In this document: positions 29,001 to 62,900 of the stretch, piece by piece
Layout: every line of letters starts with the position of its first letter
Position numbering within the stretch: position 1 is the first letter of the stretch
Assembly (NCBI GenBank): GCA_002269645.1
Contig: NIVC01002740.1
Location: forward strand, 80,182-144,181
Length of the DNA: 64,000 bases
Origin: Macrostomum lignano
Taxonomy: Eukaryota
Reading direction: 5' to 3'
Position numbers and translations under genes: made by a program
The notes under the pieces: model-generated
What the model saw: the letters and a program-made list of their open reading frames with translations, nothing else
What the model was told of the DNA's origin: nothing
The model's database searches: none

Positions 29001-30767
29001 TGCCTATCCTATCGACTGAGTTGCTTGAACTTCTTGAAAACTGCAACTTAAAATAGGTATATCACCGCCAACATTGGCACTACTAACTGTACCACCACTA
29101 CTTAAGCGTCTGGTAGCAGTATCTAAATCTATGCATTCTAAATCAGGAATGAATTTTTTCAAGGAACACAATTTATGTTTACGATTGCGACTCATACACA
29201 CGACATACTATACCAGATTTTGCTTAAATAAACAATTCTAAATTCTTATCAGTAATATACGCAAGCAACTTCAGGATATCAAGTATAAACCATTGAAAAA
29301 ACAATGAGCAAGGATGATACACTGAGTAATATAGTAATAGACACATCAAGTCTGAACATAAAAACACTGAATTCGGGAGAGAGATTTTTCAAATAATTAA
29401 AGATGTATAACAAATATAAGTCAGTTAAATAAAGTGAAACATGCTTCTAAAAGCTCCTACTGTTAACGTCGCTTTCACTAACATGTTTAACTACTTTAAT
29501 GATGATGATAAAGTGATGGCACACCTGAGACACCCGAATTGGCACATCCGAATTGGCACATCCGAATTGGCACATCTGAGACACCCGAATTGGCACATCC
29601 GAATTGGCACACCTGAGACACCCGAATTGGCACATCCGAATTGGCACATCCGAATTGGCACATCTGAGACACCCGAATTGGCACATCCGAATTGGCACAC
29701 CTGAGACACCCGAATTGGCACATCCGAATTGGCACATCTGAGACACCCGAATTGGCACACCTGAGACACCCGAATTGGCACATCCGAATTGGCACATCTG
29801 AGACACCCGAATTGGGACATCCGAATTGGCGCATCTGAGACACCCGAATTGGCACATCCGAATTGGCACACCTGAGACACCCGAATTGGCACATCCGAAT
29901 TGGCACATCTGAGACATCCGAATTGGCACATCCGAATTGGCACATCCGAATTGGCACACCTGAGACACCCGAATTGGCACACCTGAGACACCCGAATTGG
30001 CACATCTGAGACACCCGAATTGGCACACCTGAGACACCCGAATTGGCACACCTGAGACACCCGAATTGGCACATCCGAATTGGCACATCTGAGACACCCG
30101 AATTGGCACATCTGAGACACCCGAATTGGCATATCTGAAACATCCGAATTGGCACATCTGAGACACCCGAATTGGCACATCTGAGACACCCGAATTGGCA
30201 CACCTGAGACACCCGAATTGGCACATCTGAAACATCCGAATTGGCACATCTGAGATACCCGGATTAGCGCAGTTAAAATCAAGTTCTAATACGAGGCCGC
30301 TACCTGCCTCGCCCCTTTTTGGATGTTTAAGGCAACGATGATGTCTAAGTTTTTTTCTACTTCCCAATCTTTCAGGCACCTCAGAGCCGCCCCCGCAGCT
30401 GCCGCCCCGACAGGCGGTGTCGCCAGCAGCATCGGCAATCAGCGGAGCCTCGGTCCCGGAGCCGGTGTCGCAGCCGTGGTACCACGGCCCCATCAGCCGG
30501 CAGCAGGCCGAACGGTTGCTGTCAGCCGCCGGCGATTTTCTTGTCCGAGCAGCCACCGGCCAGCCCGGCCAGTTTGTGCTGAGCGGCCGCCTGGCCGAGG
30601 GCCGCTGCAAGCACCTGCTATTGGTTGATCCTGACGGCCGGGTTCGAACTCGGGACCGCGCGTTCGATAGTCTTGAACAGCTAGTTGCTTTCCACGTTGA
30701 TAGCCGGTTGCCCATAGTTAGTGAGGACAGCGAGCTGGTCCTGTGCTGTCCTGTGTCCAGAGCTTAA
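23026..30767 (+). CDS. SHC1: Shc adaptor protein (PTB-CH1-SH2), about 387 aa
   Basis: Exons 23026-23196, 23298-23898, 30376-30767 (1164 nt, frame-consistent). PTB: GVTYGVRYLG, IAHHNLINVSFASGGDSDTVDCVAYVAKD, RACHVIECPDGLA.EVVSTIGQAFELRY. SH2: PWYHGPISRQQAERLL...GDFLVR...GQFVLSG...KHLLLVDPDGRVRTRDRAFDS. Confidence 0.93.
24030..24160. repeat. Left remnant of the TGGCACACCTGAGACACCCGAAT minisatellite
   Basis: Same units and orientation as 29517-30262. Confidence 0.85.
24540..25090 (-). pseudogene. Degenerate Crypton-type tyrosine recombinase fragment
   Basis: Minus strand reads KKYIALLP..*..FLFRRP...GINWFNSFMQRLSKQCKL..YTNHCIRVT (HxxR)..LHDAG..MSEIMRITG, then after a 1-nt shift QKRERTVRCY (catalytic Tyr position). 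Contains a stop codon and frameshifts. Confidence 0.75.
26020..26260. repeat. ~14-bp minisatellite (GAGATTTGCCCGTG variants)
   Basis: Visible tandem TTGCCCG cores. Confidence 0.9.
26990..27830 (-). pseudogene. Highly degenerate EnSpm/CACTA-type transposase fossil
   Basis: Minus strand, across several frames and stops: FRQKLGKEHHVRSSPF, FPSDPMQCLNL, PEFSRKPRGLSEI, YANSLL, QNVHALNHLSADFFSFGPLSPCSA. This is the motif order of animal CACTA transposases. Confidence 0.65.
29517..30262. repeat. Mixed 14/23-bp minisatellite (TGGCACATCCGAAT / TGGCACACCTGAGACACCCGAAT) at the end of Shc intron 2
   Basis: Direct observation. Confidence 0.95.
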
Positions 30768-31034: not shown

Positions 31035-32430
31035 AGAGAGGGAGAGAACAGCCAGTGTAAAAATAGGGTCACAGGAATGTACATTGGGGCAGAGAGGGAG
31101 AGAACAGCCAGTGTAAAAATAGGGTCGCAGGAATGTATATTGGGGCAGAGAGGGAGAGAACAGTCAGTGTAAAAATAGGGTCGCAGGAATGTACATTGGG
31201 GCAGAGAGGGAGAGAACAGCCTGTGTAAGAATAGGGTCGCAGGAATGTATATTGGGGCAGAGGGAGAGAACAGCCAGTGTAAAAATAGGGTCGCAGGAAT
31301 GTACATTGGGGCAGAGAGGGAGAGAACAGCCAGTGTAAGAATAGGGTCGCAGGAATGTATATTGGGGCAGAGAGGGAGAGAACAGTCAGTGTAAAAATAG
31401 GGTCGCTGGAATGTATATTGGGGCAGAGAGGGAGAGAACAGTCAGTGTAAAAATAGGGTCGCAGGAATGTACATTGGGGCAGAGAGGGAGAGAACAGCCT
31501 GTGTAAAAATAGGGTCGCAGGAATGTACATTGGGGCAGAGAGGGAGAGAACAGCCAGTGTAAAAATAGGGTCGCAGGAATGTACATTGGGGCAGAGAGGG
31601 AGAGAACAGCCAGTGTAAAAATAGGGTCGCAGGAATGTACATTGGGGCAGAGAGGGAGAGAACAGCCAGTGTAAAAATAGGGTCGCAGGAATGTACATTG
31701 GGGCAGAGAGGGAGAGAACAGCCTGTGTAAAAATAGGGTCGCAGGAATGTACATTGGGGCAGAGAGGGAGAGAACAGCCAGTGTAAAAATAGGGTCGCAG
31801 GAATGTACATTGGGGCAGAGAGGGAGAGAACAGCCTGTGTAAAAATAGGGCCGCAGGAATGTACATTGGGGCAGAGAGGGAGAGAACAGCCAGTGTAAAA
31901 ATAGGGTCGCAGGAATGTACATTGGGGCAGAGAGGGAGAGAACAGCCAGTATAAAAATAGGGTCGCAGGAATGTACATTGGGGCAGAGAGGGAGAGAACA
32001 GCCAGTGTAAAAATAGGGTCGCAGGAATGTACATTGGGGCAGAGAGGGAGAGAACAGCCAGTGTAAAAATAGGGTCACAGAAATGTACATTGGGGCAGAG
32101 AGGGAGAGAACAGTCAGTGTAAAAATAGGGTCGCAGGAATGTACATTGGGGCAGAGAGGGAGAGAACAGTCAGTGTAAAAATAGGGTCGCGGGAATATAC
32201 ATTGGGGCAGAGAGGGAGAGAACAGCCAGTGTAAAAATAGGGTCGCAGGAATATACATTGGGGCAGAGAGGGAGAGAACAGTCAGTGTAAAAATAGGGTC
32301 GCGGGAATATACATTGGGGCAGAGAGGGAGAGAACAGCCAGTGTAAAAATAGGGTCGCAGGAATATACATTGGGGCAGAGAGGGAGAGAACAGTCAGTGT
32401 AAAAATAGGGTCGCAGGAATATACATTGAG
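31035..32430. repeat. 56-bp minisatellite (AGAGAGGGAGAGAACAGCCAGTGTAAAAATAGGGTCGCAGGAATGTACATTGGGGC)
   Basis: Period 56 measured (31501 to 31557); about 25 copies. Confidence 0.97.
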
Positions 32431-40502: not shown

Positions 40503-40690
40503 AGTATTTTGCTTCAGTTCACCCAGCCGTAAAATGGGTGCCAGCATTAGCTGGGGCAATTGAGGGTGTGTGGCGGCCCCCCCGTCCTTGGACTGAACAG
40601 CCGTACGCAGCCTTCAGATGCGCCGCGCAATAGCTGCGGCTGAGCTGTCGGTTGCACATCTGGCGATTAAAGCAGGTGTACTCACTTATT
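40503..40690 (-). mobile_element. Possible SINE fragment with Meta-domain-like core
   Basis: Minus strand GCTGGCACCCATTTTACGGCTGGGTGAACTGAAGCAA resembles, from memory, the conserved core of invertebrate MetaSINEs. Bounded by an (ATT/ATC)n tract. Confidence 0.3.
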
Positions 40691-41085
40691 ATTATTACTA
40701 TTATCATCACCATCATCAATTTGAAGAAGACTGCAGCTATCTACCACGAGCCATGCTGCATGCCCCGATACATAATACTGTAGTCTAAAAGCGGACCGTT
40801 AATAAGTTAAAGTTAAGGAGCATTCTGCATGAGATCACCGTATCAGTCTGGCCCGAATCAGACACTGGGTGTAATTTTTTAAGATGTCCCACTTTCTTTA
40901 GGAATTCGAATAATTTGTCTATGGTTGAATCGGTCGGTCAGTCTGTACAGATCTTTTTCGATATTAATTTGCCTAAGCTCTGCCTTCAACGCTTGCTTGG
41001 GCATAAAAAATTATTGAGTTGTAAATTATCAAGCCGCTGAGGCATCAACGAGTTCGTAGTACAAGGAGCCTTCACCTGCGGCGCC

Positions 41086-41580
41086 ATGTTAAATTTCCAA
41101 TTCATTGCTTGCCTCGTGGTTCTTCTGACCACCGTAGCGTCAGTTCAAGCCTGCCCGAGGAGCTTTGTGGCGATCAGAAATACGTTTAGCTGTAAGTTTT
41201 GTACAGGCTCCGTCCGTTTAACATAGAGTCCGTCCGTTTAAACATGACCACACTCCCACTGTCACGCTGTTCCAGCCCGAATCAAGACGCTTAACGGACC
41301 CAGCTGCTTCACCGAGCGGTCTTTGCGCACCGCAGGCGAAACGGAGGGCACCTACGACGAACTGAAGGAGACCATGACTCCCGACGCCTGCCGCAAGCTG
41401 TGCAAAGACAAGGGCCATTCGGCTAGCAGCATCATTGCGGTGTCGCAGACGCTGTGCCACTGCGACAAGAACTTCAAAAAGGAGGGCTTATCGGACGTTG
41501 CCAAATGCACGAACAGTTGCCCGGGCAATCTGGATGAGCGTTGCGGCGGTCCGGACTATCTGTCTGCCTATCCAGTGTAG
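41086..41580 (+). CDS. Secreted single-WSC-domain protein 3 (136 aa)
   Basis: Exons 41086-41191 and 41276-41580, phase-1 intron. Signal peptide, CPRSFVAIRNTFS, then WSC CF...CRKLC...LCHC...CTNSCPGNLDERCGGPDYLSAY. Confidence 0.88.
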
Positions 41581-42554
41581 GAGCCGCGCCTCGACAGTTT
41601 GCTCAAATATAAGTTTTAGAGCATGGATGGACACCTAGCTATAGTCTGCGATACAAGTTAAGAGACAATTTTTTAGCTATCGTACTACCGAGTGAATTCT
41701 TTGTTTTAACTAACGGTAATAAATTACCACCATTCTATATATCATTTTTAAAATAAACCTGCACATTTGGCGGCCATCCAGATTTTTTTATATTTCCAAC
41801 AGGCACTACTAAACATACTGAAATATACTTGAAGTATAAGACGCTGGAGACAAATAGTATAGAGAGCTCTGCAAAGCGAGTTCACTTTTACTGCAGCTTA
41901 AAATTGCACTACTCAACTGACAAGGATGTTCTAGAAATTTCCAATCCAGAATTCAAGCATTGGCCTGCGAAACAATAAGGACTCCAAGACCAAGGATCCC
42001 ATACGAGAACATGGACTGCCCATATGGGTGGGGTATAAAGTGAAGTTCACTTCCTCAGTTCGAACTTCTAATGATGCTCTCCGTAATAAATGTGAACAGG
42101 AAATCTTGGATCATAAAGTTTCGAATTTTAAAAACCTTGCTGCAGAGAGGATAAAGTATATTTACCTAGTAACTTTAAAAGATCGAGACACAATGTAAAT
42201 TCTAGCAAAAGTGATCAGAGACATAGATTTTTACTCTCGATACGTCATTATTCACCACCTTCTTGTGATTACTTTTTGTACACTGTGAAAATCAATTGGT
42301 ACTTACGAGGCGTGTCCGGAAAGCAGTGTTAACTTTGACGAGGTTGCGCAAATGACCAAACTTGACGACGATGTAATAAGCATCCGGTTTGTATAACCAT
42401 CGCTAATCCTGCATGTACTTTAAGCTGATTTGAGTTGTCTATGACCGAGCTTTAGCCACGTGGCTTTGGCTTAAAACACGAAAAAATTATTGGGTCAAGG
42501 TTAAGCTTGACAATTCATAACAGTAGAGAAAGAGAGCCATCATAAAAAGTTGGC

Positions 42555-43063
42555 ATGGCGCATCGTTTAATCATTTTAGTATTCACCTGTGGAGTCATTC
42601 TGCTTAGCAACGTTGCCGAAGTGCATGGCTTCACCCGGGCTTTTGTAGCCTTGAAAAACATGGTCTCATGTAAGCTTGTTCAGCTGTTGTCTGATTCTGT
42701 CTTGATGACGCAAATGCAAGTCCGTCTCTGTTTGAATTCCTAGCCCGGACGCACTCCGTACTCGGTCCATCCTGCTTCACACTGAGATCCCTGAGAACTG
42801 TCGGCTCAAACGAGGGCACGTACAATAACTCCATGGTGCAGTCGTTCAAGTCCTGCCGCAACCTGTGCAAAAAGAAAGGCCACGAACAGACTGACATCAT
42901 CGCGATTGAGGTCGACTTGTGCCACTGCGGCAAGGAGTTCCGCAAAAACGGCCGGGCGGACGTCAACAAGTGCTTGCACAGCTGCCCTGGCCGGATCGAG
43001 GAGCGCTGCGGAGGGCCCGGCCACATCTCCGCTTATCCATACGATATGAAAATTGACTACTAA
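42555..43063 (+). CDS. Secreted single-WSC-domain protein 4 (144 aa)
   Basis: Exons 42555-42669 and 42744-43063, phase-1 intron. Signal peptide, FTRAFVALKNMVS, then WSC CF...CRNLC...LCHC...CLHSCPGRIEERCGGPGHISAY. Confidence 0.88.
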
Positions 43064-43586
43064 CCAGGCAGGACTGAGTACTTTAAGTAGCTGCATCAAC
43101 TAAATCGCTATATTGTCCTGGTTTAGATTTTTTGTTCTCTCATTTAAAGCACTTAGGAACGAGACGCCTTCTTTGCGTGGTACATGCGGTACCAACCAGT
43201 TTACAGATTTGTTTTGCTGTAGGCAAGCGAATTCCTCACTAAAATTAGCGCGGTAAATAAAAAAATACTGAGTTCGAAGGACAAAAGGTTACAAATAAGT
43301 TCAGCACACCTTTGACAACATGTAACGATTTACTTTAAATAACAATTGCTTCTCAAAACTTCTCTTCAAGATCTGCTATTGCCGAAGAAAGCATTTATCA
43401 GGGTATTATTTTACAACATTCTAAGATAATCTCTTAAGTGACAAAGTGAGACAGAGAGAAGGAAAGCGTCTGTTTAATGCGAATATTGGAGTCCAGCAGG
43501 AGACGGGTTCAGGAAAGTTGCAGCGGCACCGGGAAAGGGTGCCTGATGAGAAAACTTGGTGAAAAGGTGAATCGGCTAATTCGGCA

Positions 43587-46500
43587 TTAGAGAATGCCGA
43601 ACCGCTCCAGGTGTTTGTCGATTATAAAAGCGCGACAGCCTTCCAGCACTTTCTTCACATTGTCGGTGTTGACGGCGCAGGTGTAGTAATAGCAGCAGGT
43701 GTGATGGTGGTACTCGAATTTGAAATCAGCCTGGCGCTTTCGTTTCGCTATTTCCTGAAGTAGAGTTCGAGAAGTTTGAGAACAGTTTGAGAATTTCTTT
43801 AGCATTCGATTCTTAAGAAAAAAAGGAATTGATTCTATCGCCCAATATACAGACAGGCTTTTGGTCTCACTGAAAGGCACCCGAGGCTAAATTGACAGTC
43901 AAAGTCTCAATGTCCCGTTGACAGACACTACATGGTATATTGGGTTTAATTGAGTGTCACACTTCCAATGTCCCGTTGACAGAAATGTAGCATTAATTAG
44001 CTAGTAGCGAGCCCCATTTTGACCATAGACAATATTCTCAAGCTGTTTCTCGTACTGTATCTAAAATCGAGTAAAGCCGAGGCGAGAGTTTACAACCTTT
44101 CTTTCTCACTTACGCCAAAGTTAACTCCACGATTTGCGATTTGATTCATTCGCTACAAAGTGGTAGCAGAGCGTTTTTCGGACCGAAAACAACGCCACCT
44201 ATCCGTGATCACTGAATTTGTCAGCGACATCGTTCACATCGCCGGTAGGGACAACGTGGTTGCCGATGCACTATCTCGTCCCAACCTCACGTCCGAGGCG
44301 CAGCCACCATCGTCCGTAAGACTGCTAGCCGACATCCCGCCCTCGGTGGATTTGCCAGCTATCGCTCGAGCCCAGAAAGACAGTCTACCCGCCAACGACC
44401 CGCCAGTAGGACAGTTCAGCAACTTCGATATCGGGATTAAAGACTACCCATTACACTGTGAGACTTCGCAAACTAACCCGCGTCCCGTAGTCCCTGAAGT
44501 ACTACTACGTGCGGTGTTCAACTCGCTGCATTCGTTCGCACACCCCGGCAGAAAAGCTACGCAACGGCTCATTAGCTATCGCTTCTTTAGGCCGCTAATG
44601 AGTGCCGACATTCGCAAGTGGGTAGCCGAGTGCCAACAATGCCAGAAGTACAAGACTGGACGACTTGTGTAACGCCCACTGCAGCAGCTGCCTGTGCCAT
44701 CTCAGAGATTCACGACGGTACACATTAACCTGGTCGGACCGCTAACGCCTCCTGAATCTGAAGATCCTGACCCGAAGCCTCGCTACCTACTCACCATGAT
44801 CGATGCCTACTCACGCTGGTTCGAAGCAGCACTGCTTTCGAACATTGCCGCCACATCAGTCGCACGAGCCTTCCTGGAAACCTGGATTTCTCGGTTCGGC
44901 CCACCTTTGACGCTGATCAGTGACCAGGGATCCCAATTCCGAGCGGAGCTCATGAAGAACTTGAAGGGCCTACTCGGCATTCACCACATCCGCAATTCAG
45001 CCTATAATCCGAGAGAGAGCTAACGGTATCATCGAACGTGCACACCGGACGCTATAGGTCGGTTTGAAGGCGCGCGGCAAGAACTGGCTGCAGCAGCTGC
45101 CCGTCGTGCTCCTGGGCATGCGCATTTTCCCAGATGAGTCAGGTGCCTCTCCGTTCTCCGTTGTTACGGGTGAGCAACCGCTGGTCCCACCGCTCGTCAC
45201 CGACACGTCTGCGCTCAAGGAGCTCTCGACTAGTCTACACCAGCTTTTCTTCCCATACCGGCAGCCGAGAACGTGCGAGATAGCCGTGCATCTGCCAGCC
45301 GCGCTGAGGTCGTACACACACGTCTGGCTACGGTTGGACCGTCTGGCTACGGTTGGACCGTGTGCGACGACCCCTGGAGGCTCCTTACCAAGGCTCGTAC
45401 GCGGTGCTGGACAGGCACGACACCAAAATGACACTCCAGATCAACGGCAAGCCTACCGTAGTGTCGATCGATCGTGTCAAGCCCGCCACCCTGCCAACAG
45501 CCCATCAAGAGCAGCCAGCAGCCACACTGGCCCCGCCAAGCGACGCTCCCGCCTCTAACACAAGGTCGCGCAGCTCAAACCGCGCGATTCAAGAGCGAGA
45601 CCTCCGCGCAAGTCCTCCAGGAAGGACAGTCCACCTAGCAATACTTGAACAGTGCTTTAACCGATCAACCTATGACATCAGCATTGCTTGCCTACTCGTT
45701 CCCCTTCGCTGTTCAAACTTTTTGTCTCTGATTATCTAATGCATAGTGATGTACTTCATCTAGGAGGGGGAGTATCTTTTAGCATTAATTAGCTAGTAGC
45801 GAGCCCCATTTTGACCATGGACAATATTTTCAAGCTGTTTCTCGTTTACTGTATATAAAATCGAATAAAGCCGAGGCGGGCCGAGCCGAGAGTTTACAAA
45901 ATTTCTTTCTCACTTACGCCAAAGTTAATTCCACTGCGCTTTGATTCACTCGCTACAGACACTATAGTGGGTTTAATTGACAGTCACACTCCCAATGTCC
46001 CGTTGACAGACACTATATTCGGTTTAGTTGACAGTCACACTCCCAATGTCCCGTTGACAGACACTATATTCGGTTTAGTTGACAGTCACACTCCCAATGT
46101 CCCGTTGACAGACACTATATTCGGTTTAGTTGACAGTCACACTCCCAATGTCCCGTTGACAGACACTATATTCGGTTTAGTTGACAGTCACACTCCCAAT
46201 GTCCCGTTGACAGACACTATATTCGGTTTAGTTGACAGTCACACTCCCAATGTTCCGTTGACAGACACTATAATCGGTTTAGTTGACAGTCACACTCCCA
46301 ATGTCCCGTTGACAGACACTATATTCGGTTTAGTTGACAGTCACACTCCCAATGTCCCGTTGACAGACACTATATTCGGTTTGACAGTCAGGTTCTGATG
46401 GGTACGTTGGTACATGTAGCTATCTCGAACTTACCATAAAGATATTTTTCACAAAACAGGCAGTCTTGACAGTGTCAGGGTGAACTTTCGGCAGGTCCTG

Positions 46501-49500
46501 CTGCTGCTGCTGCTGCTGCTTGCCGCGTTTCTTCTTCTTGCCCGGTTCAGCCGACCCTCCGGCTGCTGCTGCAGGCTTGACTGCAGTATTGGCAGCAGCT
46601 GCAGTAGAATCAGAAGGTGCGTTCGTTAGCAAAGCCTTTTGCTGCGCCACCTGCTGCTGAGGTGACTGCTGCTGAAGGCCGTTTCCGTTCTGCGGCGTTG
46701 GGCCGTCGGCGTTTGCCGCCGCCGCAGCAGCCGCCGCGGCTGCCATTTCCTCAAGTCTGGGGAATGCGTCGAGAAATTCTCGCCGCTCCTCCTCTGCAAA
46801 GAATGATGAGAATCTGTTTTTGTTTGTTGACTGTTTTCTTCACCACCAACGCCGCCAGCGTACAAGTGACCGGTGCCCGTTCCATCCCCTGCAAAGCTAC
46901 CCTTGGTACCAGAGAAGGCACAAAAGTCATCTCATCCCAGAGTGGCCAATAACCATCCCAGAGTGGCAAACAACCATCCCAGAGTGGCCAACAACCATCC
47001 CAGAGTGGCCAACAACCATCCCAGAGTGGCCAACAACCATTCCAGAGTGGCCAACAACCATCCCAGAGTGGCCAACAACCATCCCAGAGTGGCCAACAAC
47101 CATTCCAGAGTGGCCAACAACCATTCCAGAGTGGCCAACAACCATTCCAGAGTGGCCAACAACCATTCAAGAGTGGCCAACAACCATTCCAGAGTGGCCA
47201 ACAACCATCCCAGAGTGGCCAACAACCATCCCAGAGTGGCCAACAACCATTCCAGAGTGGCCAACAACCATTCCAGAGTGGCCAACAACCATTCCAGAGT
47301 GGCCAACAACCATTCAAGAGTGGCCAACAACCATTCCAGAGTGGCCAACAACCATTCCAGAGTGACAAAAAACCATTCCCTTCTATCCCTGGGAGACATA
47401 TGAAGCATTTAAAACCAAAAGCCGACAACCAAAGCAGTAGAAAATGAATCAAAGTCTCATCATGCAAGGCGAACCAGACTGAACAGAGCCCAAGAGTGCC
47501 TAAACAAAACTGTCAAGCTATTTCGACCCTACCATTGGCCAACAGAAATACTTTCTGTTCGACTTTTTATGCAAATTTTCTACTTGTCTGCTCTGACACA
47601 AGCCAACCAGCCGGACCCAGAATAAACAGGTTTAGATGAGCTCCGACGGTTGCTTTGCTAGTGGGTTCGCTGCCTGAACTCCATGGCAACGGTAGAGATT
47701 TTATGAATCCAAACCCTGTGTTTTCTCACTAAAGCAGGGCGAGGAAAAATGCCGCTAGAACGGACTACCGACCGTACACTCAGTTTTAAGTCCGCATTTA
47801 ATCGGCATTTTTCGTTAACAAAACAGCCGATCTGAGTCTTGTCTAAGATTAAGAATCTTTCACTTGGTTTTCACTTCACAATCTCACGGTTGCTGAGCTA
47901 ATAAATTTTTGAGCTTGTGATCGCCCACCGTTCGACTGCTCTTACCGGATGGCACGAAGCGGTCAAAGTCCAGCTGGCTGATGAACCGCACGAGGTCCAA
48001 CGGTCCGATGTGCTTCTTTTTCTGCTTCTGAGACGCAGCTTCTGCTGTTGCAGTCGACGCTCTGCCAATTACAGTCGGAACTGTTGAAAGCTTGCAGCTC
48101 CGACGACGGTGCATCACTGGATGTTCGTCGCTGTCGTTCTGGTGCGAAGACCCGGCAGAATCAGCAGCAGCCACAGTTGCCGCCGTCGCTTCCATTTCGA
48201 TTGTCTGCCTGCAGTGAGTCAGCATCGTTTCCAGCGACTTGCCCGCCCTGATCTTCTCCTCCAGTTGGTCAATCTTGTTGATAAACAACAACACGGACAC
48301 GTCCTGCAGGTAGCGGTTCAGCCACACCTCCTGGAACGTGTCGAGCGACTCCAACAGCCGATTCTTTGGTCGCTCAATGCCGACATCTTCTTTCAACGTC
48401 AGGTCGAAGCTGCTTACGTCGCACAAGTAGAGAATGGCGGTGACGTTGTTGAAACACTGAATCCATTTCTTTCGCTCGCCCTTCTGTCCGCCAACGTCGT
48501 AGACTCTGGTTTTTGAAGGGTTTGAATTTGATGAAGTGCTGGAACTTGACAACATCACATCAATATGAGCGGCTCTTGACTTCCTACTCTCGGCTAGGTA
48601 TTCAGACATGTCACTCAGTAGGCCTCGAAACAACTGTGCTACTTTTCGAGTCGCGAAAAGCTCACAAAAGGGCAGTAAATTCTTGGCAACGAGAAAGCCA
48701 ATTCTGTTGTACATCTTGGAAGCAAATATTCGTGTGTTTGCCTGTTTGCTTTTGGTGAAGACAAAATTCGGGGTTGACTTGCGCACAGAAGGACGGTGCA
48801 TGTTTCAACAAGCATTGCACCAAAGTCCAGACTCTAGAGTATCCACAGCACGTATTAATTATTTCTTTCCTACGTCGTATCTGTATCCCTTTACCCTTTC
48901 TGCGGTCCCTCACTCCCCTGTTCCTAATATATGCACTAATAATTTGTCAATAAATCTTGATTCCAATATTTGTTCACCTGAACTTTGCCGTATGATTTCC
49001 ATCCTTGATCTCGAAGCGAATATCCGTGATATTGTTTGTCATGATTCGGCAACGCAGAATGTCCTGATCCGTGGGTGTGTAGGTCTTGTTTTTGAATAGG
49101 TGAATCCTGTCCAAAAAGCTGGAAAATTAACGGTTTTTGGTGTTATCAAATATCAGAACTAAACAGATTTTTGTTCAGCAATAAGAAGACTCAAAAGTAA
49201 AAAGAAGCATTAACCACTAACTATTTAGCACAATCAATGAGCTGATAGCGATTTGAGTTTCGAAAGCTCTCCTGAACACCCGGATCCTGCCACAGGCGTT
49301 CAGCTGCGCGAAAGAATCGACTCGAATAAACGAACGGGTCCAGGTCCGCTCGGGACGCGTTGTGCGCCTGGTTGTCGGTCATCTGCTGCAGCAGCCACGC
49401 GCCCATTTCGGCGGCCTCCTCGCTGCCGAATGGGATGCCCAACTTGTCCATGGCCGCCACAATGCACTGCGAGTTTTGGTTTCAGCAAACAAATATGAAT

Positions 49501-50222
49501 AACTGGCAATACGAACTGAATTGTGGTGCAAGCGGTGGGATCGTGTCCAGCTTATCAATTTGTTTGCCGAACTTACAGCTATGGAGTCTCGAATGTTTCT
49601 GCGCATGTACGCCAGCTTCTCGCGTCTCTCTCTGAAGCAATCAAAGTAACGTGTCAATGAACCGTCAATAAAGAGCTGTTTGGTCCCACTTTTCCTCTGG
49701 AGAAAACACGAGGGCCTATGGTATATTGGGAGACCGTACTGCTATAACCTGTTTAAACCTCTTCGAAATGCATTAGCGATTGCTATGGAACCTTTCCCGA
49801 TTTTTAGCAATAAATAGTTACTTTTACATGTTGAATTCCCTGTGTGGATATAAAGTTGGAATTTGTCGGACTGGAGATCAATTAACCATTTACAACCCGG
49901 TCTGGCTTATTGAAGGAGCTAGTGGTGTTCTCTTAAAACGGTTTTATCTTTTTATCTAGAACGAAATAATGCATCTAAAAGGGTCTCTCATCACAGACCA
50001 CAAGAATAACTATGTCGGGGAAAAAGCATTAGGAAAGATATATTGCATAGCTAGGGATAGCTGTAAATAAGCCCTTTCAAAATCCAAGTCTTATAACTCC
50101 ACATTGGTACGTCTTTTATAAATACCAGCGACTCTTGATAGCTGCTCACTCGTAACTGAAGCCGTTGATGTGTATGATCTGCATCTGTTTGCACACTGTG
50201 GACTTGCCAGATTCGCCAGTAC
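43587..50222 (-). CDS. Heterotrimeric G-protein alpha subunit, divergent Gs-like, with large low-complexity insertions (first exon not located)
   Basis: Exons 50222-50150, 49631-49577, 49466-49222, 49118-48978, 48505-47946, 46793-46435, 43754-43587, all GT-AG and frame-consistent. G1 GTGESGKST; G2 DILRCRIMT; G3 DVGGQ; G4 NKID; G5 TCAV; C-terminus KHLERFGIL. Gs-like segments: [29 protein letters not shown]. Confidence 0.92.
43986..45957 (+). mobile_element. Internally deleted Gypsy/Ty3 LTR retrotransposon (LTR-PBS-RNaseH end-integrase-PPT-LTR) in the last G-alpha intron
   Basis: 5' LTR 43986-44157 (TGTAGC...GCTACA); PBS TGGTAGCAGAGC 44161-44172 (initiator-Met type). Coding remnants [22 protein letters not shown]...[29 protein letters not shown], frameshifted. 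PPT AGGAGGGGGAG 45762-45772; 3' LTR ~45778-45957; TSD GAAA/GACA. Confidence 0.92.
45958..46390. repeat. 51-bp minisatellite (GACACTATATTCGGTTTAGTTGACAGTCACACTCCCAATGTCCCGTTGACA)
   Basis: About 8 copies, plus about 2 degenerate copies at 43890-43985 on the other side of the Gypsy insertion. Confidence 0.95.
46935..47365. repeat. 21-bp minisatellite (CCAGAGTGGCCAACAACCATT) in a G-alpha intron
   Basis: About 20 copies. Confidence 0.96.
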
Positions 50223-52107: not shown

Positions 52108-52900
<793 letters not shown>

Positions 52901-53975: not shown

Positions 53976-56900
53976 ATCAAACAGACACAGAAATCTGTTC
54001 CAGTTGTGTCTGTAGGTTAGGCGGACCACCTTCCGAGAGCAAAAGCCTCAAACAGACTGAGAGAGCTGCTTCAGTTGTGTTTGTAGGTTATGTGGACCAC
54101 CTGAGAGCCAGAGCCTAAACAGACAGAGAAATCTGTTCGAGTTATGTCTGTAGGTTAGGTGGACCAGCTACTCCACAGCACTTCTAGGCGATAATCTGAG
54201 CCAGGAGTCTCCGAGAGCCTCTCGTTACACATCCAGATGTTCTGCCTTGATGCTGGACTAGCTCACTTTCTAGGAATATGTTCTGATTGCATTCTAACAA
54301 ACTGAAGCATTTTCTGCACTAAACTTTCTCGGCGGCTCTGAGAGCCAGAGCCCCAAACAGACAGAGAAATCTGTTCGAGTTGTGTCTGTAGGTTAGGTGG
54401 ACCAGCTACTCCACAGCACTTCTAGGCGATAATCTGAGCCAGGAGTCTCCGAGAGCCTCTCGTTACACATCCAGATGTTCTGCCTTGATGCTGGACTAGC
54501 TCACTTTCTAGGAATCTGTTCTGATTGCATTCTAACAAACTGAAGCATTTTCTGCACTAAACTTTCTCGGCGGCTCTGAGAGCCAGAGCCTCAAACAGAT
54601 AGAGAAATCTGTTCGAGTTGTGTCTGTAGGTTAGGTGGACCAGCTACTCCACAGCACTTCTAGGCGATAATCTGAGCCAGGAATCTCCGAGAGCCTCTCG
54701 TTACACATCCAGATGTTCTGCCTTGATGCTGGACTAGCTCACTTTCTAGGAATCTGTTCTGATTGCATTCTAACAAACTGAAGCATTTTCTGCACTAAAC
54801 TTTCTCGGCGGCTCTGAGAGCCAGAGTCTAAACAGACAGAGAAATCTGTTCGAGTTGTGTCTGTAGGTTAGGTGGACCAGGTACTCCACAGCACTTCTAG
54901 GCGATAATCTGAGCCAGGAGTCTCCGAGAGCCTCTCGTTACACATCCAGATGTTCTGCCTTGATGCTGGACTAGCTCACTTTCTAAGAATCTGTTCTGAT
55001 TGCATTCTAACAAACTGAAGCATTTTCTGCACTAAACTTTCTCGGCGGCTCTGAGAGCCAGAGCCTCAAACAGATAGAGAAATCTGTTCGAGTTGTGTCT
55101 GTAGGTTAGGTGGACCAGCTACTCCACAGCACTTCTAGGCGATAATCTGAGCCAGGAATCTCCGAGAGCCTCTCGTTACACATCCAGATGTTCTGCCTTG
55201 ATGCTGGACTAGCTCACTTTCTAGGAATCTGTTCTGATTGCATTCTAACAAACTGAAGCATTTTCTGCACTAAACTTTCTCGGCGGCTCTGAGAGCCAGA
55301 GCCTCAAACAGACAGAGAAATCTGTTCGAGTTGTGTCTGTAGATTAGGTGGACCACCCTCTGAGAGCAAAAGCCTAAAACAGACTGAGAGAGTTGCTTCA
55401 GTTGTGTTTGTAGGTTATGTGGACCACCTAAGAGCCAGAGCCTCAAACAGACAGAGAAATCTGTTCGAGTTGTGTCTGTAGGTTAGGTGGATCAGCTACT
55501 CCACAGCACTTCTAGGCGATAATCTGAGCCAGGAGTCTCCGAGAGCCTCTCGTTACACATCCAGATGTTCTGCCTTGATGCTGGACTAGCTCACTTTCTA
55601 GGAATCTGTTCTGATTGCATTCTAACAAACTGAAGCATTTTCTGCACTAAACTTTCTCGGCGGCTCTGAGAGCCAGAGCCCCAAACAGACAGAGAAATCT
55701 GTTCGAGTTGTGTCTGTAGGTTAGGTGGACCAGCTACTCCACAGCACTTCTAGGCGATAATCTGAGCCAGGAGTCTCCGAGAGCCTCTCGTTACACATCC
55801 AGATGTTCTGCCTTGATGCTGGACTAGCTCACTTTCTAGGAATCTGTTCTGATTGCATTCTAACAAACTAAAGCATTTTCTGCACTAAACTTTCTCGGCG
55901 GCTCTGAGAGCCAGAGCCTCAAACAGATAGAGAAATCTGTTCGAGTTGTGTCTGTAGGTTAGGTGGACCAGCTACTCCACAGCACTTCTAGGCGATAATC
56001 TGAGCCAGGAATCTCCGAGAGCCTCTCGTTACACATCCAGATGTTCTGCCTTGATGCTGGACTAGCTCACTTTCTAGGAATCTGTTCTGATTGCATTCTA
56101 ACAAACTGAAGCATTTTCTGCACTAAACTTTCTCGGCGGCTCTGAGAGCCAGAGCCCCAAACAGACAGAGAAATCTGTTCGAGTTGTGTCTGTAGGTTAG
56201 GTGGACCAGCTACTCCACAGAACTTCTAGGCGATAATCTGAGCCAGGAGTCTCCGAGAGCCTCTCGTTACACATCCAGATGTTCTGCCTTGATGCTGGAC
56301 TAGCTCACTTTCTAGGAATCTGTTCTGATTGCATTCTAACAAACTGAAGCATTTTCTGCACTAAACTTTCTCGGCGGCTCTGAGAGCCAGAGCCTCAAAC
56401 AGACAGAGAAATCTGTTCGAGTTGTGTCTGTAAATTAGGTGGACCACCCTCTGAGAGCAAAAGCCTAAAACAGACTGAGAGAGTTGCTTCAGTTGTGTTT
56501 GTAGGTTATGTGGACCACCTAAGAGCCAGAGCCTCAAACAGATAGAGAAATCTGTTCGAGTTGTGTCTGTAGGTTAGGTGGATCAGCTACTCCACAGCAC
56601 TTCTAGGCGATAATCTGAGCCAGGAGTCTCCGAGAGCCTCTCGTTACACATCCAGATGTTCTGCCTTGATGCTGGACTAGCTCACTTTCTAGGAATCTGT
56701 TCTGATTGCATTCTAACAAACTGAAGCATTTTCTGCACTAAACTTTCTCGGCGGCTCTGAGAGCCAGAGCCCCAAACAGACAGAGAAATCTGTTCGAGTT
56801 GTGTCTGTAGGTTAGGTGGACCAGCTACTCCACAGCACTTCTAGGCGATAATCTGAGCCAGGAGTCTCCGAGAGCCTCTCGTTACACATCCAGATGTTCT

Positions 56901-59900
56901 GCCTTGATGCTGGACTAGCTCACTTTCTAGGAATCTGTTCTGATTGCATTCTAACAAACTGAAGCATTTTCTGCACTAAACTTTCTCGGCGGCTCTGAGA
57001 GCCAGAGCCTCAAACAGATAGAGAAATCTGTTCGAGTTGTGTCTGTAGGTTAGGTGGACCAGCTACTCCACAGCACTTCTAGGCGATAATCTGAGCCAGG
57101 AATCTCCGAGAGCCTCTCGTTACACATCCAGATGTTCTGCCTTGATGCTGGACTAGCTCACTTTCTAGGAATCTGTTCTGATTGCATTCTAACAAACTGA
57201 AGCATTTTCTGCACTAAACTTTCTCGGCGGCTCTGAGAGCCAGAGTCTAAACAGACAGAGAAATCTGTTCGAGTTGTGTCTGTAGGTTAGGTGGACCAGG
57301 TACTCCACAGCACTTCTAGGCGATAATCTGAGCCAGGAGTCTCCGAGAGCCTCTCGTTACACATCCAGATGTTCTGCCTTGATGCTGGACTAGCTCACTT
57401 TCTAGGAATCTGTTCTGATTGCATTCTAACAAACTGAAGCATTTTCTGCACTAAACTTTCTCGGCGGCTCTGAGAGCCAGAGCCCCAAACAGACAGAGAA
57501 ATCTGTTCGAGTTGTGTCTGTAGGTTAGGTGGACCAGCTACTCCACAGAACTTCTAGGCGATAATCTGAGCCAGGAGTCTCCGAGAGCCTCTCGTTACAC
57601 ATCCAGATGTTCTGCCTTGATGCTGGACTAGCTCACTTTCTAGGAATCTGTTCTGATTGCATTCTAACAAACTGAAGCATTTTCTGCACTAAACTTTCTC
57701 GGCGGCTCTGAGAGCCAGAGCCTCAAACAGACAGAGAAATCTGTTCGAGTTGTGTCTGTAGGTTAGGTGGATCAGCTACTCCACAGCACTTCTAGGCGAT
57801 AATCTGAGCCAGGAGTCTCCGAGAGCCTCTCGTTACACATCCAGATGTTCTGCCTTGATGTTGGACTAGCTCACTTTCTAGGAATCTGTTCTGATTGCAT
57901 TCTAACAAACTGAAGCATTTTCTGCACTAAACTTTCTCGGCGGCTCTGAGAGCCAGAGCCTCAAACAGACAGAGAAATCTGTTCGAGTTGTGTCTGTAGG
58001 TTAGGTGGACCAGCTACTCCACAGCACTTCTAGGCGATAATCTGAGCCAGGAATCTCCGAGAGCCTCTCGTTACACATCCAGATGTTCTGCCTTGATGCT
58101 GGACTAGCTCACTTTCTAGGAATCTGTTCTGATTGCATTCTAACAAACTGAAGCATTTTCTGCACTAAACTTTCTCGGCGGCTCTGAGAGCCAGAGTCTA
58201 AACAGACAGAGAAATCTGTTCGAGTTGTGTCTGTAGGTTAGGTGGACCAGCTACTCCACAGCACTTCTAGGCGATAATCTGAGCCAGGAGTCTCCGAGAG
58301 CCTCTCGTTACACATCCAGATGTTCTGCCTTGATGCTGGACTAGCTCACTTTCTAGGAATCTGTTCTGATTGCATTCTAACAAACTGAAGCATTTTCTGC
58401 ACTAAACTTTCTCGGCGGCTCTGAGAGCCAGAGCCCAAACAGACAGAGAAATCTGTTCGAGTTGTGTCTGTAGGTTAGGTGGACCAGCTACTCCACAGAA
58501 CTTCTAGGCGATAATCTGAGCCAGGAGTCTCCGAGAGCCTCTCGTTACACATCCAGATGTTCTGCCTTGATGCTGGACTAGCTCACTTTCTAGGAATCTG
58601 TTCTGATTGCATTCTAACAAACTGAAGCATTTTCTGCACTAAACTTTCTCGGCGGCTCTGAGAGCCAGAGCCTCAAACAGACAGAGAAATCTGTTCGAGT
58701 TGTGTCTGTAGGTTAGGTGGACCAGCTACTCCACAGCACTTCTAGGCGATAATCTGAGCCAGGAGTCTCCGAGAGCCTCTCGTTACACATCCAGATGTTC
58801 TGCCTTGATGCTGGACTAGCTCACTTTCTAGGAATCTGTTCTGATTGCATTCTAACAAACTGAAGCATTTTCTGCACTAAACTTTCTCGGCGGCTCTGAG
58901 AGCCAGAGCCTCAAACAGACAGAGAAATCTGTTCGAGTTGTGTCTGTAGGTTAGGTGGACCAGCTACTCCACAGCACTTCTAGGCGATAATCTGAGCCAG
59001 GAATCTCCGAGAGCCTCTCGTTACACATCCAGATGTTCTGCCTTGATGCTGGACTAGCTCACTTTCTAGGAATCTGTTCTGATTGCATTCTAACAAACTG
59101 AAGCATTTTCTGCACTAAACTTTCTCGGCGGCTCTGAGAGCCAGAGCCCCAAACAGACAGAGAAATCTGTTCGAGTTGTGTCTGTAGGTTAGGTGGACCA
59201 GCTACTCCACAGCACTTCTAGGCGATAATCTGAGCCAGGAATCTCCGAGAGCCTCTCGTTACACATCCAGATGTTCTGCCTTGATGCTGGACTAGCTCAC
59301 TTTCTAGGAATCTGTTCTGATTGCATTCTAACAAACTGAAGCATTTTCTGCACTAAACTTTCTCGGCGGCTCTGAGAGCCAGAGCCCCAAACAGACAGAG
59401 AAATCTGTTCGAGTTGTGTCTGTAGGTTAGGTGGACCAGCTACTCCACAGCACTTCTAGGCGATAATCTGAGCCAGGAGTCTCCGAGAGCCTCTCGTTAC
59501 ACATCCAGATGTTCTGCCTTGATGCTGGACTAGCTCACTTTCTAGGAATCTGTTCTGATTGCATTCTAACAAACTGAAGCATTTTCTGCACTAAACTTTC
59601 TCGGCGGCTCTGAGAGCCAGAGCCCAAACAGACAGAGAAATCTGTTCGAGTTGTGTCTGTAGGTTAGGTGGACCAGCTACTCCACAGCACTTCTAGGCGA
59701 TAATCTGAGCCAGGAGTCTCCGAGAGCCTCTCGTTACACATCCAGATGTTCTGCCTTGATGCTGGACTAGCTCACTTTCTAGGAATCTGTTCTGATTGCA
59801 TTCTAACAAACTGAAGCATTTTCTGCACTAAACTTTCTCGGCGGCTCTGAGAGCCAGAGCCTAAACAGACAGAGAAATCTGTTCGAGTTGTGTCTGTAGG

Positions 59901-62900
59901 TTAGGTGGATCAGCTACTTCACAGCACTTCTATGCGATAATCTGAGCCAGGAGTCTCCGAGAGCCTCTCGTTACACATCCAGATGTTCTGCCTTGATGCT
60001 GGACTAGCTCACTTTCTAGGAATCTGTTCTGATTGCATTCTAACAAACTGAAGCATTTTCTGCACTAAACTTTCTCGGCGGCTCTGAGAGCCAGAGCCTC
60101 AAACAGACAGAGAAATCTGTTCGAGTTGTGTCTGTAGGTTAGGTGGACCAGCTACTCCACAGCACTTCTAGGCGATAATCTGAGCCAGGAGTCTCCGAGA
60201 GCCTCTCGTTACACATCCAGATGTTCTGCCTTGATGCTGGACTAGCTCACTTTCTAGGAATCTGTTCTGATTGCATTCTAACAAACTGAAGCATTTTCTG
60301 CACTAAACTTTCTCGGCGGCTCTGAGAGCCAGAGCCTCAAACAGACAGAGAAATCTGTTCGAGTTGTGTCTGTAGGTTAGGTGGACCAGCTACTCCACAG
60401 CACTTCTAGGCGATAATCTGAGCCAGGAGTCTCCGAGAGCCTCTCGTTACACATCCAGATGTTCTGCCTTGATGCTGGACTAGCTCACTTTCTAGGAATC
60501 TGTTCTGATTGCACTCTAACAAACTGAAGCATTTTCTGCACTAAACTTTCTCGGCGGCTCTGAGAGCCAGAGCCTCAAACAGACAGAGAAATCTGTTCGA
60601 GTTGTGTCTGTAGGTTAGGTGGACCAGGTACTCCACAGCACTTCTAGGCGATAATCTGAGCCAGGAGTCTCCGAGAGCCTCTCGTTACACATCCAGATGT
60701 TCTGCCTTGATGCTGGACTAGCTCACTTTCTAGGAATCTGTTCTGATTGCATTCTAACAAACTGAAGCATTTTCTGCACTAAACTTTCTCGGCGGCTCTG
60801 AGAGCCAGAGCCTAAACAGATAGAGAAATCTGTTCGAGTTGTGTCTGTAGGTTAGGTGGACCAGCTACTCCACAGCACTTCTAGGCGATAATCTGAGCCA
60901 GGAATCTCCGAGAGCCTCTCGTTACACATCCAGATGTTCTGCCTTGATGCTGGACTAGCTCACTTTCTAGGAATCTGTTCTGATTGCATTCTAACAAACT
61001 GAAGCATTTTCTGCACTAAACTTTCTCGGCGGCTCTGAGAGCCAGAGCCCCAAACAGACAGAGAAATCTGTTCGAGTTGTGTCTGTAGGTTAGGTGGACC
61101 AGCTACTCCACAGCACTTCTAGGCGATAATCTGAGCCAGGAGTCTCCGAGAGCCTCTCGTTACACATCCAGATGTTCTGCCTTGATGCTGGACTAGCTCA
61201 CTTTCTAGGAATCTGTTCTGATTGCATTCTAACAAACTGAAGCATTTTCTGCACTAAACTTTCTCGGCGGCTCTGAGAGCCAGAGCCCAAACAGACAGAG
61301 AAATCTGTTCGAGTTGTGTCTGTAGGTTAGGTGGACCAGCTACTCCACAGCACTTCTAGGCGATAATCTGAGCCAGGAGTCTCCGAGAGCCTCTCGTTAC
61401 ACATCCAGATGTTCTGCCTTGATGCTGGACTAGCTCACTTTCTAGGAATCTGTTCTGATTGCATTCTAACAAACTGAAGCATTTTCTGCACTAAACTTTC
61501 TCGGCGGCTCTGAGAGCCAGAGCCTAAACAGACAGAGAAATCTGTTCGAGTTGTGTCTGTAGGTTAGGTGGACCAGCTACTTCACAGCACTTCTATGCGA
61601 TAATCTGAGCCAGGAGTCTCCGAGAGCCTCTCGTTACACATCCAGATGTTCTGCCTTGATGCTGGACTAGCTCACTTTCTAGGAATCTGTTCTGATTGCA
61701 TTCTAACAAACTGAAGCATTTTCTGCACTAAACTTTCTCGGCGGCTCTGAGAGCCAGAGCCCCAAACAGACAGAGAAATCTGTTCGAGTTGTGTCTGTAG
61801 GTTAGGTGGACCAGCTACTCCACAGCACTTCTAGGCGATAATCTGAGCCAGGAGTCTCCGAGAGCCTCTCGTTACACATCCAGATGTTCTGCCTTGATGC
61901 TGGACTAGCTCACTTTCTAGGAATCTGTTCTGATTGCATTCTAACAAACTGAAGCATTTTCTGCACTAAACTTTCTCGGCGGCTCTGAGAGCCAGAGCCC
62001 CAAACAGACAGAGAAATCTGTTCGAGTTGTGTCTGTAGGTTAGGTGGACCAGCTACTCCACAGCACTTCTAGGCGATAATCTGAGCAGGAGTCTCCGAGA
62101 GCCTCTCGTTACACATCCAGATGTTCTGCCTTGATGCTGGACTAGCTCACTTTCTAGGAATCTGTTCTGATTGCATTCTAACAAACTGAAGCATTTTCTG
62201 CACTAAACTTTCTCGGCGGCTCTGAGAGCCAGAGCCTAAACAGACAGAGAAATCTGTTCGAGTTGTGTCTGTAGGTTAGGTGGATCAGCTACTTCACAGC
62301 ACTTCTATGCGATAATCTGAGCCAGGAGTCTCCGAGAGCCTCTCGTTACACATCCAGATGTTCTGCCTTGATGTTGGACTAGCTCACTTTCTAGGAATCT
62401 GTTCTGATTGCATTCTAACAAACTGAAGCATTTTCTGCACTAAACTTTCTCGGCGGCTCTGAGAGCCAGAGTCTAAACAGACAGAGAAATCTGTTCGAGT
62501 TGTGTCTGTAGGTTAGGTGGACCAGCTACTCCACAGCACTTCTAGGCGATAATCTGAGCCAGGAGTCTCCGAGAGCCTCTCGTTACACATCCAGATGTTC
62601 TGCCTTGATGCTGGACTAGCTCACTTTCTAGGAATCTGTTCTGATTGCATTCTAACAAACTGAAGCATTTTCTGCACTAAACTTTCTCGGCGGCTCTGAG
62701 AGCCAGAGTCTAAACAGACAGAGAAATCTGTTCGAGTTGTGTCTGTAGGTTAGGTGGATCAGCTACTCCACAGCACTTCTAGGCGATAATCTGAGCCAGG
62801 AGTCTCCGAGAGCCTCTCGTTACACATCCAGATGTTCTGCCTTGATGTGGACTAGCTCACTTTCTAGGAATCTGTTCTGATTGCATTCTAACAAACTGAA

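Follow-up and report, generated by a model that had tools for sequence, protein, structure and literature searches.

Heterotrimeric G-protein alpha subunits (G-alpha) are among the most length-conserved of signalling proteins, and the textbook 'extra-large' forms, XL-alpha-s and the plant XLG proteins, grow at the N-terminus through an extension that derives from an alternative or extra first exon. An internal insert of ~110 residues, largely disordered and carrying regulatory modification sites, is found in yeast Gpa1, where it occupies the helical domain. The window analysed here, a 64,000-nucleotide (nt) stretch of the genome of the free-living flatworm Macrostomum lignano (assembly GCA_002269645.1, contig NIVC01002740.1, positions 80,182–144,181), encodes on its minus strand a G-alpha that resembles XL-alpha-s and XLG in a length well beyond ~350–400 amino acids (aa) and in the low complexity of its extra sequence. 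Whereas the extra sequence of those proteins is N-terminal (the mammalian XL exon is discussed in PMC5896119), that of the window protein is internal and lies in the Ras-like domain, between helices alphaG and alpha4; it differs from the insert of Gpa1 in its position, and the two have no sequence relationship. The original prediction for this locus, of a G-alpha whose expansion is internal, between alphaG and alpha4, and not N-terminal, was borne out, but the protein does not stand alone: it is one of a lophotrochozoan clade, and an extended alphaG-alpha4 connection is common to all members of that clade.

In complexes that G-protein-coupled receptors (GPCRs) make with Gs, the alphaG-alpha4 loop, alpha4 and the alpha4-beta6 loop form a groove for the extended fifth transmembrane helix (TM5) of the receptor, in agreement with the earlier description of the loop as a class-specific surface near receptor contacts; Gi/o proteins are without this groove and have an alphaG-alpha4 loop 13 residues shorter than that of Gs (PMC11187927). 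Residues of the alphaG-alpha4 segment also influence which receptors Gq-type proteins prefer (PMC10432815). As for further Gs-type genes, fly GalphaF has been treated as a second preGNAS copy (PMC5896119), four 'G-alpha-s' paralogs have been described in Schmidtea, with RNA interference phenotypes for planarian G-alpha-s2–4 (PMC10078920), and three 'G-alpha-s' paralogs are given for Maritigrella and G-alpha-s1/2 for Schistosoma mansoni (PMC6805122). A literature search returned no account of this lophotrochozoan clade or of its loop, no paper in which these genes are named and no study describing the loop in the trematode orthologues.

The gene comprises seven exons in the window, all with canonical AG/GT borders, and the spliced product is 533 aa plus a stop codon with exon 1 excluded (coding sequence in the window, 1602 nt), the same length as first reported. 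Reading along the minus strand, the first coding exon within the window carries the P-loop (50150..50222; tblastn with P0001/P0002) and is followed by an exon with the start of the helical domain (49577..49631), an exon that continues the helical domain and ends ...YQLIDCAK(Y) (49222..49466) and an exon, FLDRIHLF..., with switch I and its conserved Arg and Thr (48978..49118), these three likewise placed by tblastn and their borders. A 560-nt exon formed by a single uninterrupted open reading frame (ORF; 47946..48505) holds switch II, alpha3, NKID and alphaG and continues past alphaG through a helix extension, a first disordered segment and the first half of a conserved island. The second half of the island, a second disordered segment and the start of alpha4 are encoded by a 359-nt exon (46435..46793), and the last exon (43587..43754), found by tblastn with the paralog P0002 and delimited by an AG acceptor and the stop codon, supplies the alpha4-beta6 loop, beta6, TCAVNT and alpha5. 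A regular expression for the Gs-type TCAxDT run on the window did not recover this C-terminal exon because the motif there is TCAVNT. A database search with the spliced protein gave as its top match an M. lignano protein at 98% identity, auto-named 'adenylate cyclase-stimulating G alpha protein'. UniRef models of the window gene are incomplete at both ends; one of them, A0A1I8J2T1, is an exact substring of the window-allele protein (aa 14–477).

A sister copy of the gene is present in the same assembly (locus L002), with exons that are 97–100% identical (99.5% for the 560-nt exon), and it is represented by the model PAA72070.1 (P0121). In this model the exons are joined exactly as in the window model, the join of the last exon included, and both low-complexity inserts are kept. 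It runs through 37 codons of 5' leader, as is typical of transcript-derived ORFs, and the M. lignano annotation was built from RNA sequencing (RNA-seq) data with STAR, StringTie, TACO, a de novo transcriptome and TransDecoder (PMC5730564). No RNA-derived (Logan) contigs for the window protein were found in the collection searched. Exon 1 (MSLCFAP...QLLLL) was found only at the sister locus, 6.3 kb upstream of its P-loop exon. The sister-copy N-terminus ahead of LLLLG amounts to 38 aa from MSLC, and all of the extra length lies between alphaG and alpha4.

The stretch from KIRAGKS to VHPDTV, previously put at about 199 aa, is exactly that long (protein aa 263–461; DNA 48234–47946 and 46793–46486), compared with 23 aa for canonical Gs in the same alignment frame and 21–23 aa for Gs/Golf. 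Against solved Golf/Gs, ~198 query residues stand in for ~21, and the match to solved Golf splits into two parts (query 53–346 and 545–613, facing chain residues 20–297 and 319–380), so that about 175 extra residues really sit in one surface loop, the alphaG-alpha4 connection. The insert is rich in Ala (19%) and Gln (11%) and contains the LDFDRFVP island; a Pfam search with the 200-aa insert alone gave a best E of 0.88, which came from poly-Ala, and no borrowed domain. The filler was shown to be exonic and in frame. Over the two insert-coding stretches (289 and 308 nt) the annotated frame alone is open, the other five containing 1–3 stops each, and the probability of 199 random codons staying open is ~7e-5. 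Searched for splice signals, the insert DNA held no GTRAG donor and no pyrimidine-tract acceptor, and the sole GTAAG of the large exon sits in the conserved core, not in the insert. Skipping of the insert-bearing exons, at 560 and 359 nt, would shift the frame and yields no in-frame short form.

Judged by its motifs, the protein is a G-protein alpha subunit of the heterotrimeric type with putative GTPase competence. Pfam PF00503 (G-alpha) matched at E = 1.1e-84 (284.8 bits; cut-off, 48.8) in two stretches split by the insert, the P-loop, switch I (LRCRIMT), switch II (DVGGQ..RKKW), NKID and TCAVNT are all present, and the residues of the nucleotide-binding and catalytic motifs are invariant in a 60-sequence alignment. 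Searches against solved structures with phmmer ranked Golf/Gs (1.5e-79 to 1e-72) ahead of Go/Gq/Gt (~1e-58), and the top Foldseek matches were Gs and Golf (template-modelling score, 0.83–0.88). With Gs and Golf, its closest solved relatives by both sequence and fold, it has in common the P-loop, the Arg and Thr of switch I, the Gln of switch II, NKxD, TCAxxT, an identical switch II face (KWIQCFN) and a recognisable FPxF-type motif (LDFDRF in the window protein, YFPEFARY in Gs). Apart from the loop (199 aa vs 23 aa), it differs from Gs in switch II (QKGERKKW vs QRDERRKW), in NKID vs NKQD, in the alpha3-beta5 segment (NRYLQD vs NRWLRT, IWNNRWLRTISV), in a longer and basic alpha4-beta6 loop and in the C-terminal tail (HLERFGIL vs HLRQYELL). 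The switch II face and the alpha3-beta5 segment have a role in cyclase contact. Activation of adenylyl cyclase is putative and unproven for the window protein, the 'adenylate cyclase-stimulating' of the database being an automatic name.

A neighbour-joining tree of 111 Gs-type sequences (365 columns) placed the window protein outside canonical Gs and grouped it with sequences from molluscs, annelids, nemerteans, brachiopods and flatworms (bootstrap of the clade, 96%; of flatworm monophyly within it, 67%); the G-alpha-f (Gf) clade, of lepidopterans and other arthropods, was recovered at 100%, and the lophotrochozoan clade and Gf jointly at 99%. By its sequence the window protein is not the worm's canonical Gs, which is the separate protein P0166 (400 aa, with QRDERRKW and HLRKYELI). 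The features of the lophotrochozoan clade are all seen in the window protein, namely GGQ(R/Q/K)GERKKW, NKID, a long alpha4-beta6 loop and the tail HL(E/R)RFGI(L/I), together with an add-on in the alphaG-alpha4 connection made of an FPxF-type motif and an (E/D)F(L/I/V)xx(F/Y/L)P helix. Its likeness to arthropod G-alpha-f consists of the sister-group position in the tree, switch II (GGQRGERKKW) and the character of a divergent second protostome Gs-type gene. Gf differs in having a loop of 15–19 aa, shorter than that of Gs, without the EFLxAFP helix and the basic/Ser linker, and in keeping NKQD and another C-terminus. The two groups are reciprocally monophyletic and both long-branched, and they differ in loop, NKxD and tail. 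Orthology between them is tentative because the tree is neighbour-joining only. In profile searches that scored only 8000 candidates each, planarians, cestodes and monogeneans were represented by canonical Gs alone, with no sequence of theirs in the long-loop clade. Nematode and other Gs with a long NKxD-to-TCA distance were considered as parallels and rejected, their extra length lying mostly after alpha4; the long Gs of Trichinella, Trichuris and Plectus look like gene-model read-through and were not used as evidence. Oysters have several tandem copies of the clade gene on one chromosome, and three oyster sequences (P0003–P0005, 810–819 aa) and one from M. lignano (P0006, 765 aa) are about double length or contain a long non-homologous block; these four look like fused tandem copies or read-through models rather than giant G-alphas.

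Across the alignment the loop comprises 15–19 aa in Gf, 20–28 aa in Gs, 45–54 aa in molluscs, 60–68 aa in annelid and nemertean sequences, 77 and 130 aa in brachiopods (130 aa in Lingula), 142 aa in an M. lignano paralog, 199 aa in the window gene and 215–238 aa in trematodes. The members of the lophotrochozoan clade follow a shared plan that begins with a short helix after alphaG in the alignment and continues with an FPxF-type motif corresponding to YFPEFARY of Gs (FPDFDKFSPS in oyster, LDFDRFVPS in the window protein), a clade-specific 'EFLxAFP' helix (SEKLQFLEALP in oyster) and a basic/Ser linker (RKKARTTSRPD, RRRGRSSSRTD, KKKGRSASRPD), after which alpha4 starts with VHPDTVKTA. The trematode orthologues, among them Schistosoma haematobium P0059 (609 aa), Paragonimus P0024 (584 aa) and Opisthorchis P0127, belong to the same clade and share with the window protein two expansion sites around the island (…IARLVAESPYHNFKPTAQQRTDFL…) and a C-terminus of the form HLERF/YGLL. 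Their loops differ in being longer and Ser/Asn-rich where that of the window protein is Ala/Gln-rich, and they have the switch II DVSGQRGA/ERKKW and have mostly lost the basic motif ahead of alpha4.

Structure prediction was carried out on P0121, which is full length and 98% identical to the window protein (9 of 533 residues differ) and whose numbering is that of the window protein plus 81. The 27-residue helix after alphaG, with which insert 1 starts (aa 264–290; 48151..48231, minus strand), was predicted by AlphaFold at P0121 residues 345–371 with a predicted local distance difference test score (pLDDT) of ~93, and a helix-compatible segment occupies the same place in the trematode and brachiopod sequences of the alignment. 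It is followed by disordered segment 1 (aa 291–338; 48007..48150, minus strand), which is rich in Ser, Lys, Ala, His, Arg and Thr (pLDDT, 41–58), by the conserved island with a poly-Ala helix (aa 339–387; 46708..48006, minus strand, with coding parts 48006–47946 and 46793–46708) and by disordered segment 2 (aa 388–459; 46492..46707, minus strand; Gln, 22%; Ala, 18%; pLDDT, 35–47). The island (P0121 residues 421–450) was predicted as three helices at a pLDDT of 91–96, which drops to 69–74 in the poly-Ala helix, and the flanking stretches 381–420 and 471–530, the latter followed by alpha4, reached only 35–58. In the oyster protein P0007 the add-on (301–334) was predicted at 92–95 and the basic/Ser motif at ~50, so that disordered segment 2 occupies the place of a clade-wide linker that was already disordered. 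The layout first proposed, two low-complexity inserts around a conserved LDFDRFVP island, therefore stands, though not the implied extent of the low complexity: a fold is predicted for ~75 of the 199 residues, and true filler is confined to aa 291–338 and 388–459.

Taken together, the alignment and the predicted structures indicate a conserved folded add-on common to the lophotrochozoan clade, the rest of the loop being fast-evolving low-complexity filler, and suggest that the two sites around the add-on were inflated in flatworms and, as a separate event of smaller extent, in Lingula. The filler of the window gene is Ala/Thr/Ser-rich, poly-Ala and (CAG)8-encoded poly-Gln, and that of a paralog is poly-Gly. 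Two further M. lignano paralogs carry inserts at the same two sites. The gene of one of them, P0002, has an extra intron inside insert 1 (L001 14456–15036, between ~aa 326 and 327) that the window gene is without, and an intron was therefore gained or lost within the expanded loop; its alleles (P0002 and P0123) differ by a 7-residue in-frame poly-Gly indel. Three sequences assembled as Logan transcript contigs (P0129–P0131, ~450 aa) contain a duplicated basic/Ser unit ahead of alpha4 (…KRRGSGSGS…KKHRGSRSGSKS…), and the linker is therefore an expansion hotspot outside flatworms too.

The window gene and its sister copy are collinear from window position 52509 down to 40525, and across the 1602-nt coding sequence they show 20 differences, no indels and no stops. 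Amino-acid change is enriched in the insert (8/199 vs 1/334, Fisher p = 0.002): eight amino-acid changes and three silent ones fall in the 199-aa insert, compared with one amino-acid change and four silent ones in the other 334 residues. Seven of the eight insert changes lie in the 120 residues predicted to be disordered, six in disordered segment 2 and one in disordered segment 1. The island (GPLDLV..FPRLEE) has no substitutions relative to the sister copy, and its poly-Ala tail has one synonymous change. This is the pattern of a core under constraint, flanked by low-complexity sequence that is translated but only weakly constrained.

We consider it probable that the add-on alters the receptor- and membrane-facing side of the protein and that the flatworm filler grew by slippage and is mainly a spacer. 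Slippage-type repeat growth would have produced the expansions, the loop being one that extends out of the Ras-like domain and can vary in length, and the expansions would act at most as flexible spacers, with the functional information held by the conserved island and the basic motifs. From the position of the loop in GPCR–Gs structures, the island and basic motifs would face the membrane and the receptor on the side of TM5 and the third intracellular loop (ICL3), and the add-on, the longer alpha4-beta6 loop and the different C-terminal tail would jointly change this side of the protein. By analogy with these complexes an effect of the loop on receptor or membrane contacts is plausible, and its position makes the tuning of such contacts a more likely role than nuclear import.

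Several points weigh against this interpretation. The positions of the basic patches are conserved in three M. lignano paralogs, which hints that parts of the filler may be constrained. Near-neutral evolution of the filler rests on only 11 substitutions, and with such small counts the contrast of nonsynonymous to synonymous change, taken by itself, falls short of significance (p = 0.11). High pLDDT denotes a confident local fold and says nothing on the position at which the modelled island packs. The tree is a neighbour-joining one of 365 columns, and its union of the clade with Gf could stem from long-branch attraction. The transcript evidence belongs to the sister copy and is second-hand, through the deposited annotation. 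Finally, exon 1 was not found in the window's 13.8 kb upstream of the gene, and with exon 1 outside the window and a 9.6-kb satellite at the place expected for intron 1, the window copy could be 5'-truncated or silent.

The alternative that survives best is that the polybasic patches are themselves functional, by binding acidic lipids or a partner near the receptor, by offering kinase sites for a phospho-switch or by acting as a nuclear localisation signal; we regard this as unlikely. The three patches listed in the original prediction are all present, HRRR (48111–48100) and KQKKKH (48027–48010) in disordered segment 1 and KKKKRGK (46539–46519) in disordered segment 2, all on the minus strand. 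KKKKRGK stands at the place of a clade motif ahead of alpha4, BBBxRSxSR[PT]D, that is conserved in molluscs, annelids and brachiopods, and nearly all non-trematode members of the clade have here a basic run followed by Ser or Thr (RRRGRSSSRTD, KKKGRSASRPD, KRRRKTSD), the unit that is duplicated in some, apparently molluscan, members (P0129–P0131). All three M. lignano paralogs have a second basic patch ahead of the amphipathic helix, with the sequences KKKH, KKKN and RKKS, and a nemertean has RRKSS there; in the window protein the patch is KQKKKH, just ahead of GPLDL. A functional role for the patches would also fit the location of the loop, which adjoins the receptor TM5 groove and hence lies near the membrane, and the resemblance of the linker to basophilic-kinase sites in most species, HRRRS of the window protein being a candidate RRxS-type site.

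The patches do not, however, keep these properties uniformly. The window protein has kept the basic half of the linker, but its Ser half is replaced by (CAG)8 poly-Gln (46518–46495, minus strand, directly after KKKKRGK), whereas KRRRKTSD is retained in the paralog P0002, and the residues after KQKKKH are IGP, so that both conserved patches, two of the three in the window protein, are left without a Ser/Thr acceptor. Trematodes keep the motif ahead of alpha4 poorly. The patches are not a Macrostomum-specific nuclear signal, because the basic motifs are shared across the clade; as read from the alignment, they appear to be remnants of old family-wide basic or basic/Ser motifs. A nuclear role is hard to square with the intact receptor- and beta-gamma-facing elements and with an N-terminal Cys that is near-invariant in the alignment, the usual position of the lipid anchor in G-alpha. 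No evidence for the nuclear targeting once suggested was found, and of the companion suggestion of lipid targeting what stands is a plausible proximity of the loop to lipid or membrane, from which a lipid-binding or phospho-switch role of the patches would be inferred. The idea that the patches make up for an N-terminal helix of low basicity was not borne out: the net charge of the N-terminus is 0 to +1 in Macrostomum and just as low (0 to +3) in Gf, whose loop has no patches.

Of comparable standing, and doubtful in our view, is the broader proposal that the island and linker form a regulatory module of the clade, in which a docking surface for TM5/ICL3 is combined with a phosphorylation-controlled electrostatic switch under coupling rules of its own. 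Were it true, these proteins would make up a distinct, unnamed lophotrochozoan G-alpha subfamily related to arthropod G-alpha-f, present in schistosomes and flukes and absent from vertebrates, with flatworm linkers that have grown into long tethers.

That the window copy is a decaying duplicate, 5'-truncated or silenced in a partly duplicated genome and changing in its insert through a loss of constraint on the whole gene, is improbable, more so than either proposal above. The surroundings of the gene would suit such a fate. Where exon 1 is absent upstream, the sequence of the sister locus is replaced by an (AGAC)n array (~200 units, 52108–52900) and, beyond it, a 238-bp satellite (~40 copies, 97–98% identity, 54101–63717), both upstream of the P-loop exon and both unrelated to the sequence of L002. 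The last intron (43755..46434, minus strand; 2.68 kb [2680 bp], vs ~290 bp in the sister copy) is enlarged because of a 51-bp tandem repeat (Tandem Repeats Finder; 8.4 copies, 98% matches, 45955–46382) and a remnant of a long-terminal-repeat retrotransposon integrase in three ORFs on the plus strand (44160–45558; Pfam Integrase_H2C2, 4.5e-15; rve, 3.5e-14) that is not in the sister copy's last intron. The UniRef model of the window allele, moreover, begins at an internal Met. The coding sequence itself argues otherwise, as all seven exons are whole, free of stops and frameshifts and bordered by good splice sites, and the ratio of one nonsynonymous to four synonymous changes outside the insert, with the island unchanged, is a pattern of purifying selection; exon 1, for its part, may lie past the end of the window.

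Highly improbable is a gene-model artefact, in which the low-complexity stretches would be unrecognised or retained introns and the real loop Gs-length: low complexity, the extra intron of P0002 in insert 1 and the incompleteness of the UniRef models at both ends would allow it, but the frame is open in the coding register alone across 597 nt with no donor or acceptor consensus inside, the RNA-seq-based model of the sister copy retains both segments where their splicing out would have contradicted the first account of the gene, three paralogs whose fillers are unrelated stay in frame, as does an allelic poly-Gly indel, the same sites are expanded in independently annotated orthologues from trematodes, brachiopods and nemerteans, and removal would take the conserved island too or need two precise cryptic introns.

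The intron that separates the two insert-bearing exons (46794..47945, minus strand) splits the conserved island and is collinear with that of L002; it contains a 21-bp tandem repeat (Tandem Repeats Finder; 21 copies, 96%, 46937–47379) that is present in the sister copy too. This array and that at 45955–46382 generate long spurious ORFs on both strands. The window as a whole is unusually dense in minisatellites (periods of 20–60 bp, up to 48 copies), with stretches at 8253–14793, 17213–18501, 21865–22896, 29534–30261 and 31035–32428, several of which yield long multi-frame ORFs. Elsewhere on the plus strand, a 533-aa ORF (1938–3539) carries a C-terminal dimerisation domain of hAT-family transposases (2.8e-6), and two exon-like ORFs, with an AAA_33 kinase-type domain (10519–10992; 2e-28) and a PTB/PID phosphotyrosine-interaction domain (23298–23933; 3.5e-20), are probably parts of two other genes of the window. 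Downstream of the G-alpha gene, L002 has two small WSC-domain genes on the opposite strand, and since window 40525–43983 is collinear with L002 13555–16948 (94–98% identity), the window probably carries these two genes as well.

The reading we favour, a change of the receptor- and membrane-facing side by a conserved add-on amid slippage-grown spacer, concerns a whole protostome branch of Gs-related proteins with a predicted folded add-on in the alphaG-alpha4 connection and, in flatworms, an inflation of the loop by up to ~tenfold. The sequences are publicly available, with automatic annotations as Gs or Gs-like, and the loop and the clade are apparently undescribed. The window gene is not the extreme case, the fluke orthologues being longer, and a clade-wide add-on beside the receptor groove is of more interest than the Ala/Gln filler. 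If the add-on changes receptor or membrane contacts, these proteins would be an unrecognised G-alpha subfamily with a coupling logic of its own, which would be relevant to the deorphanising of lophotrochozoan GPCRs, for which heterologous assays use a mammalian Gs without the add-on, and the flatworm members would give a measure of the disorder that can be accommodated on this surface. Should the filler be a neutral spacer and no more, it would clearly exemplify how repeats drive the growth of a loop in a protein under constraint. Parasitic flukes have the family and their hosts do not, and its basic biology is worth knowing for that reason.

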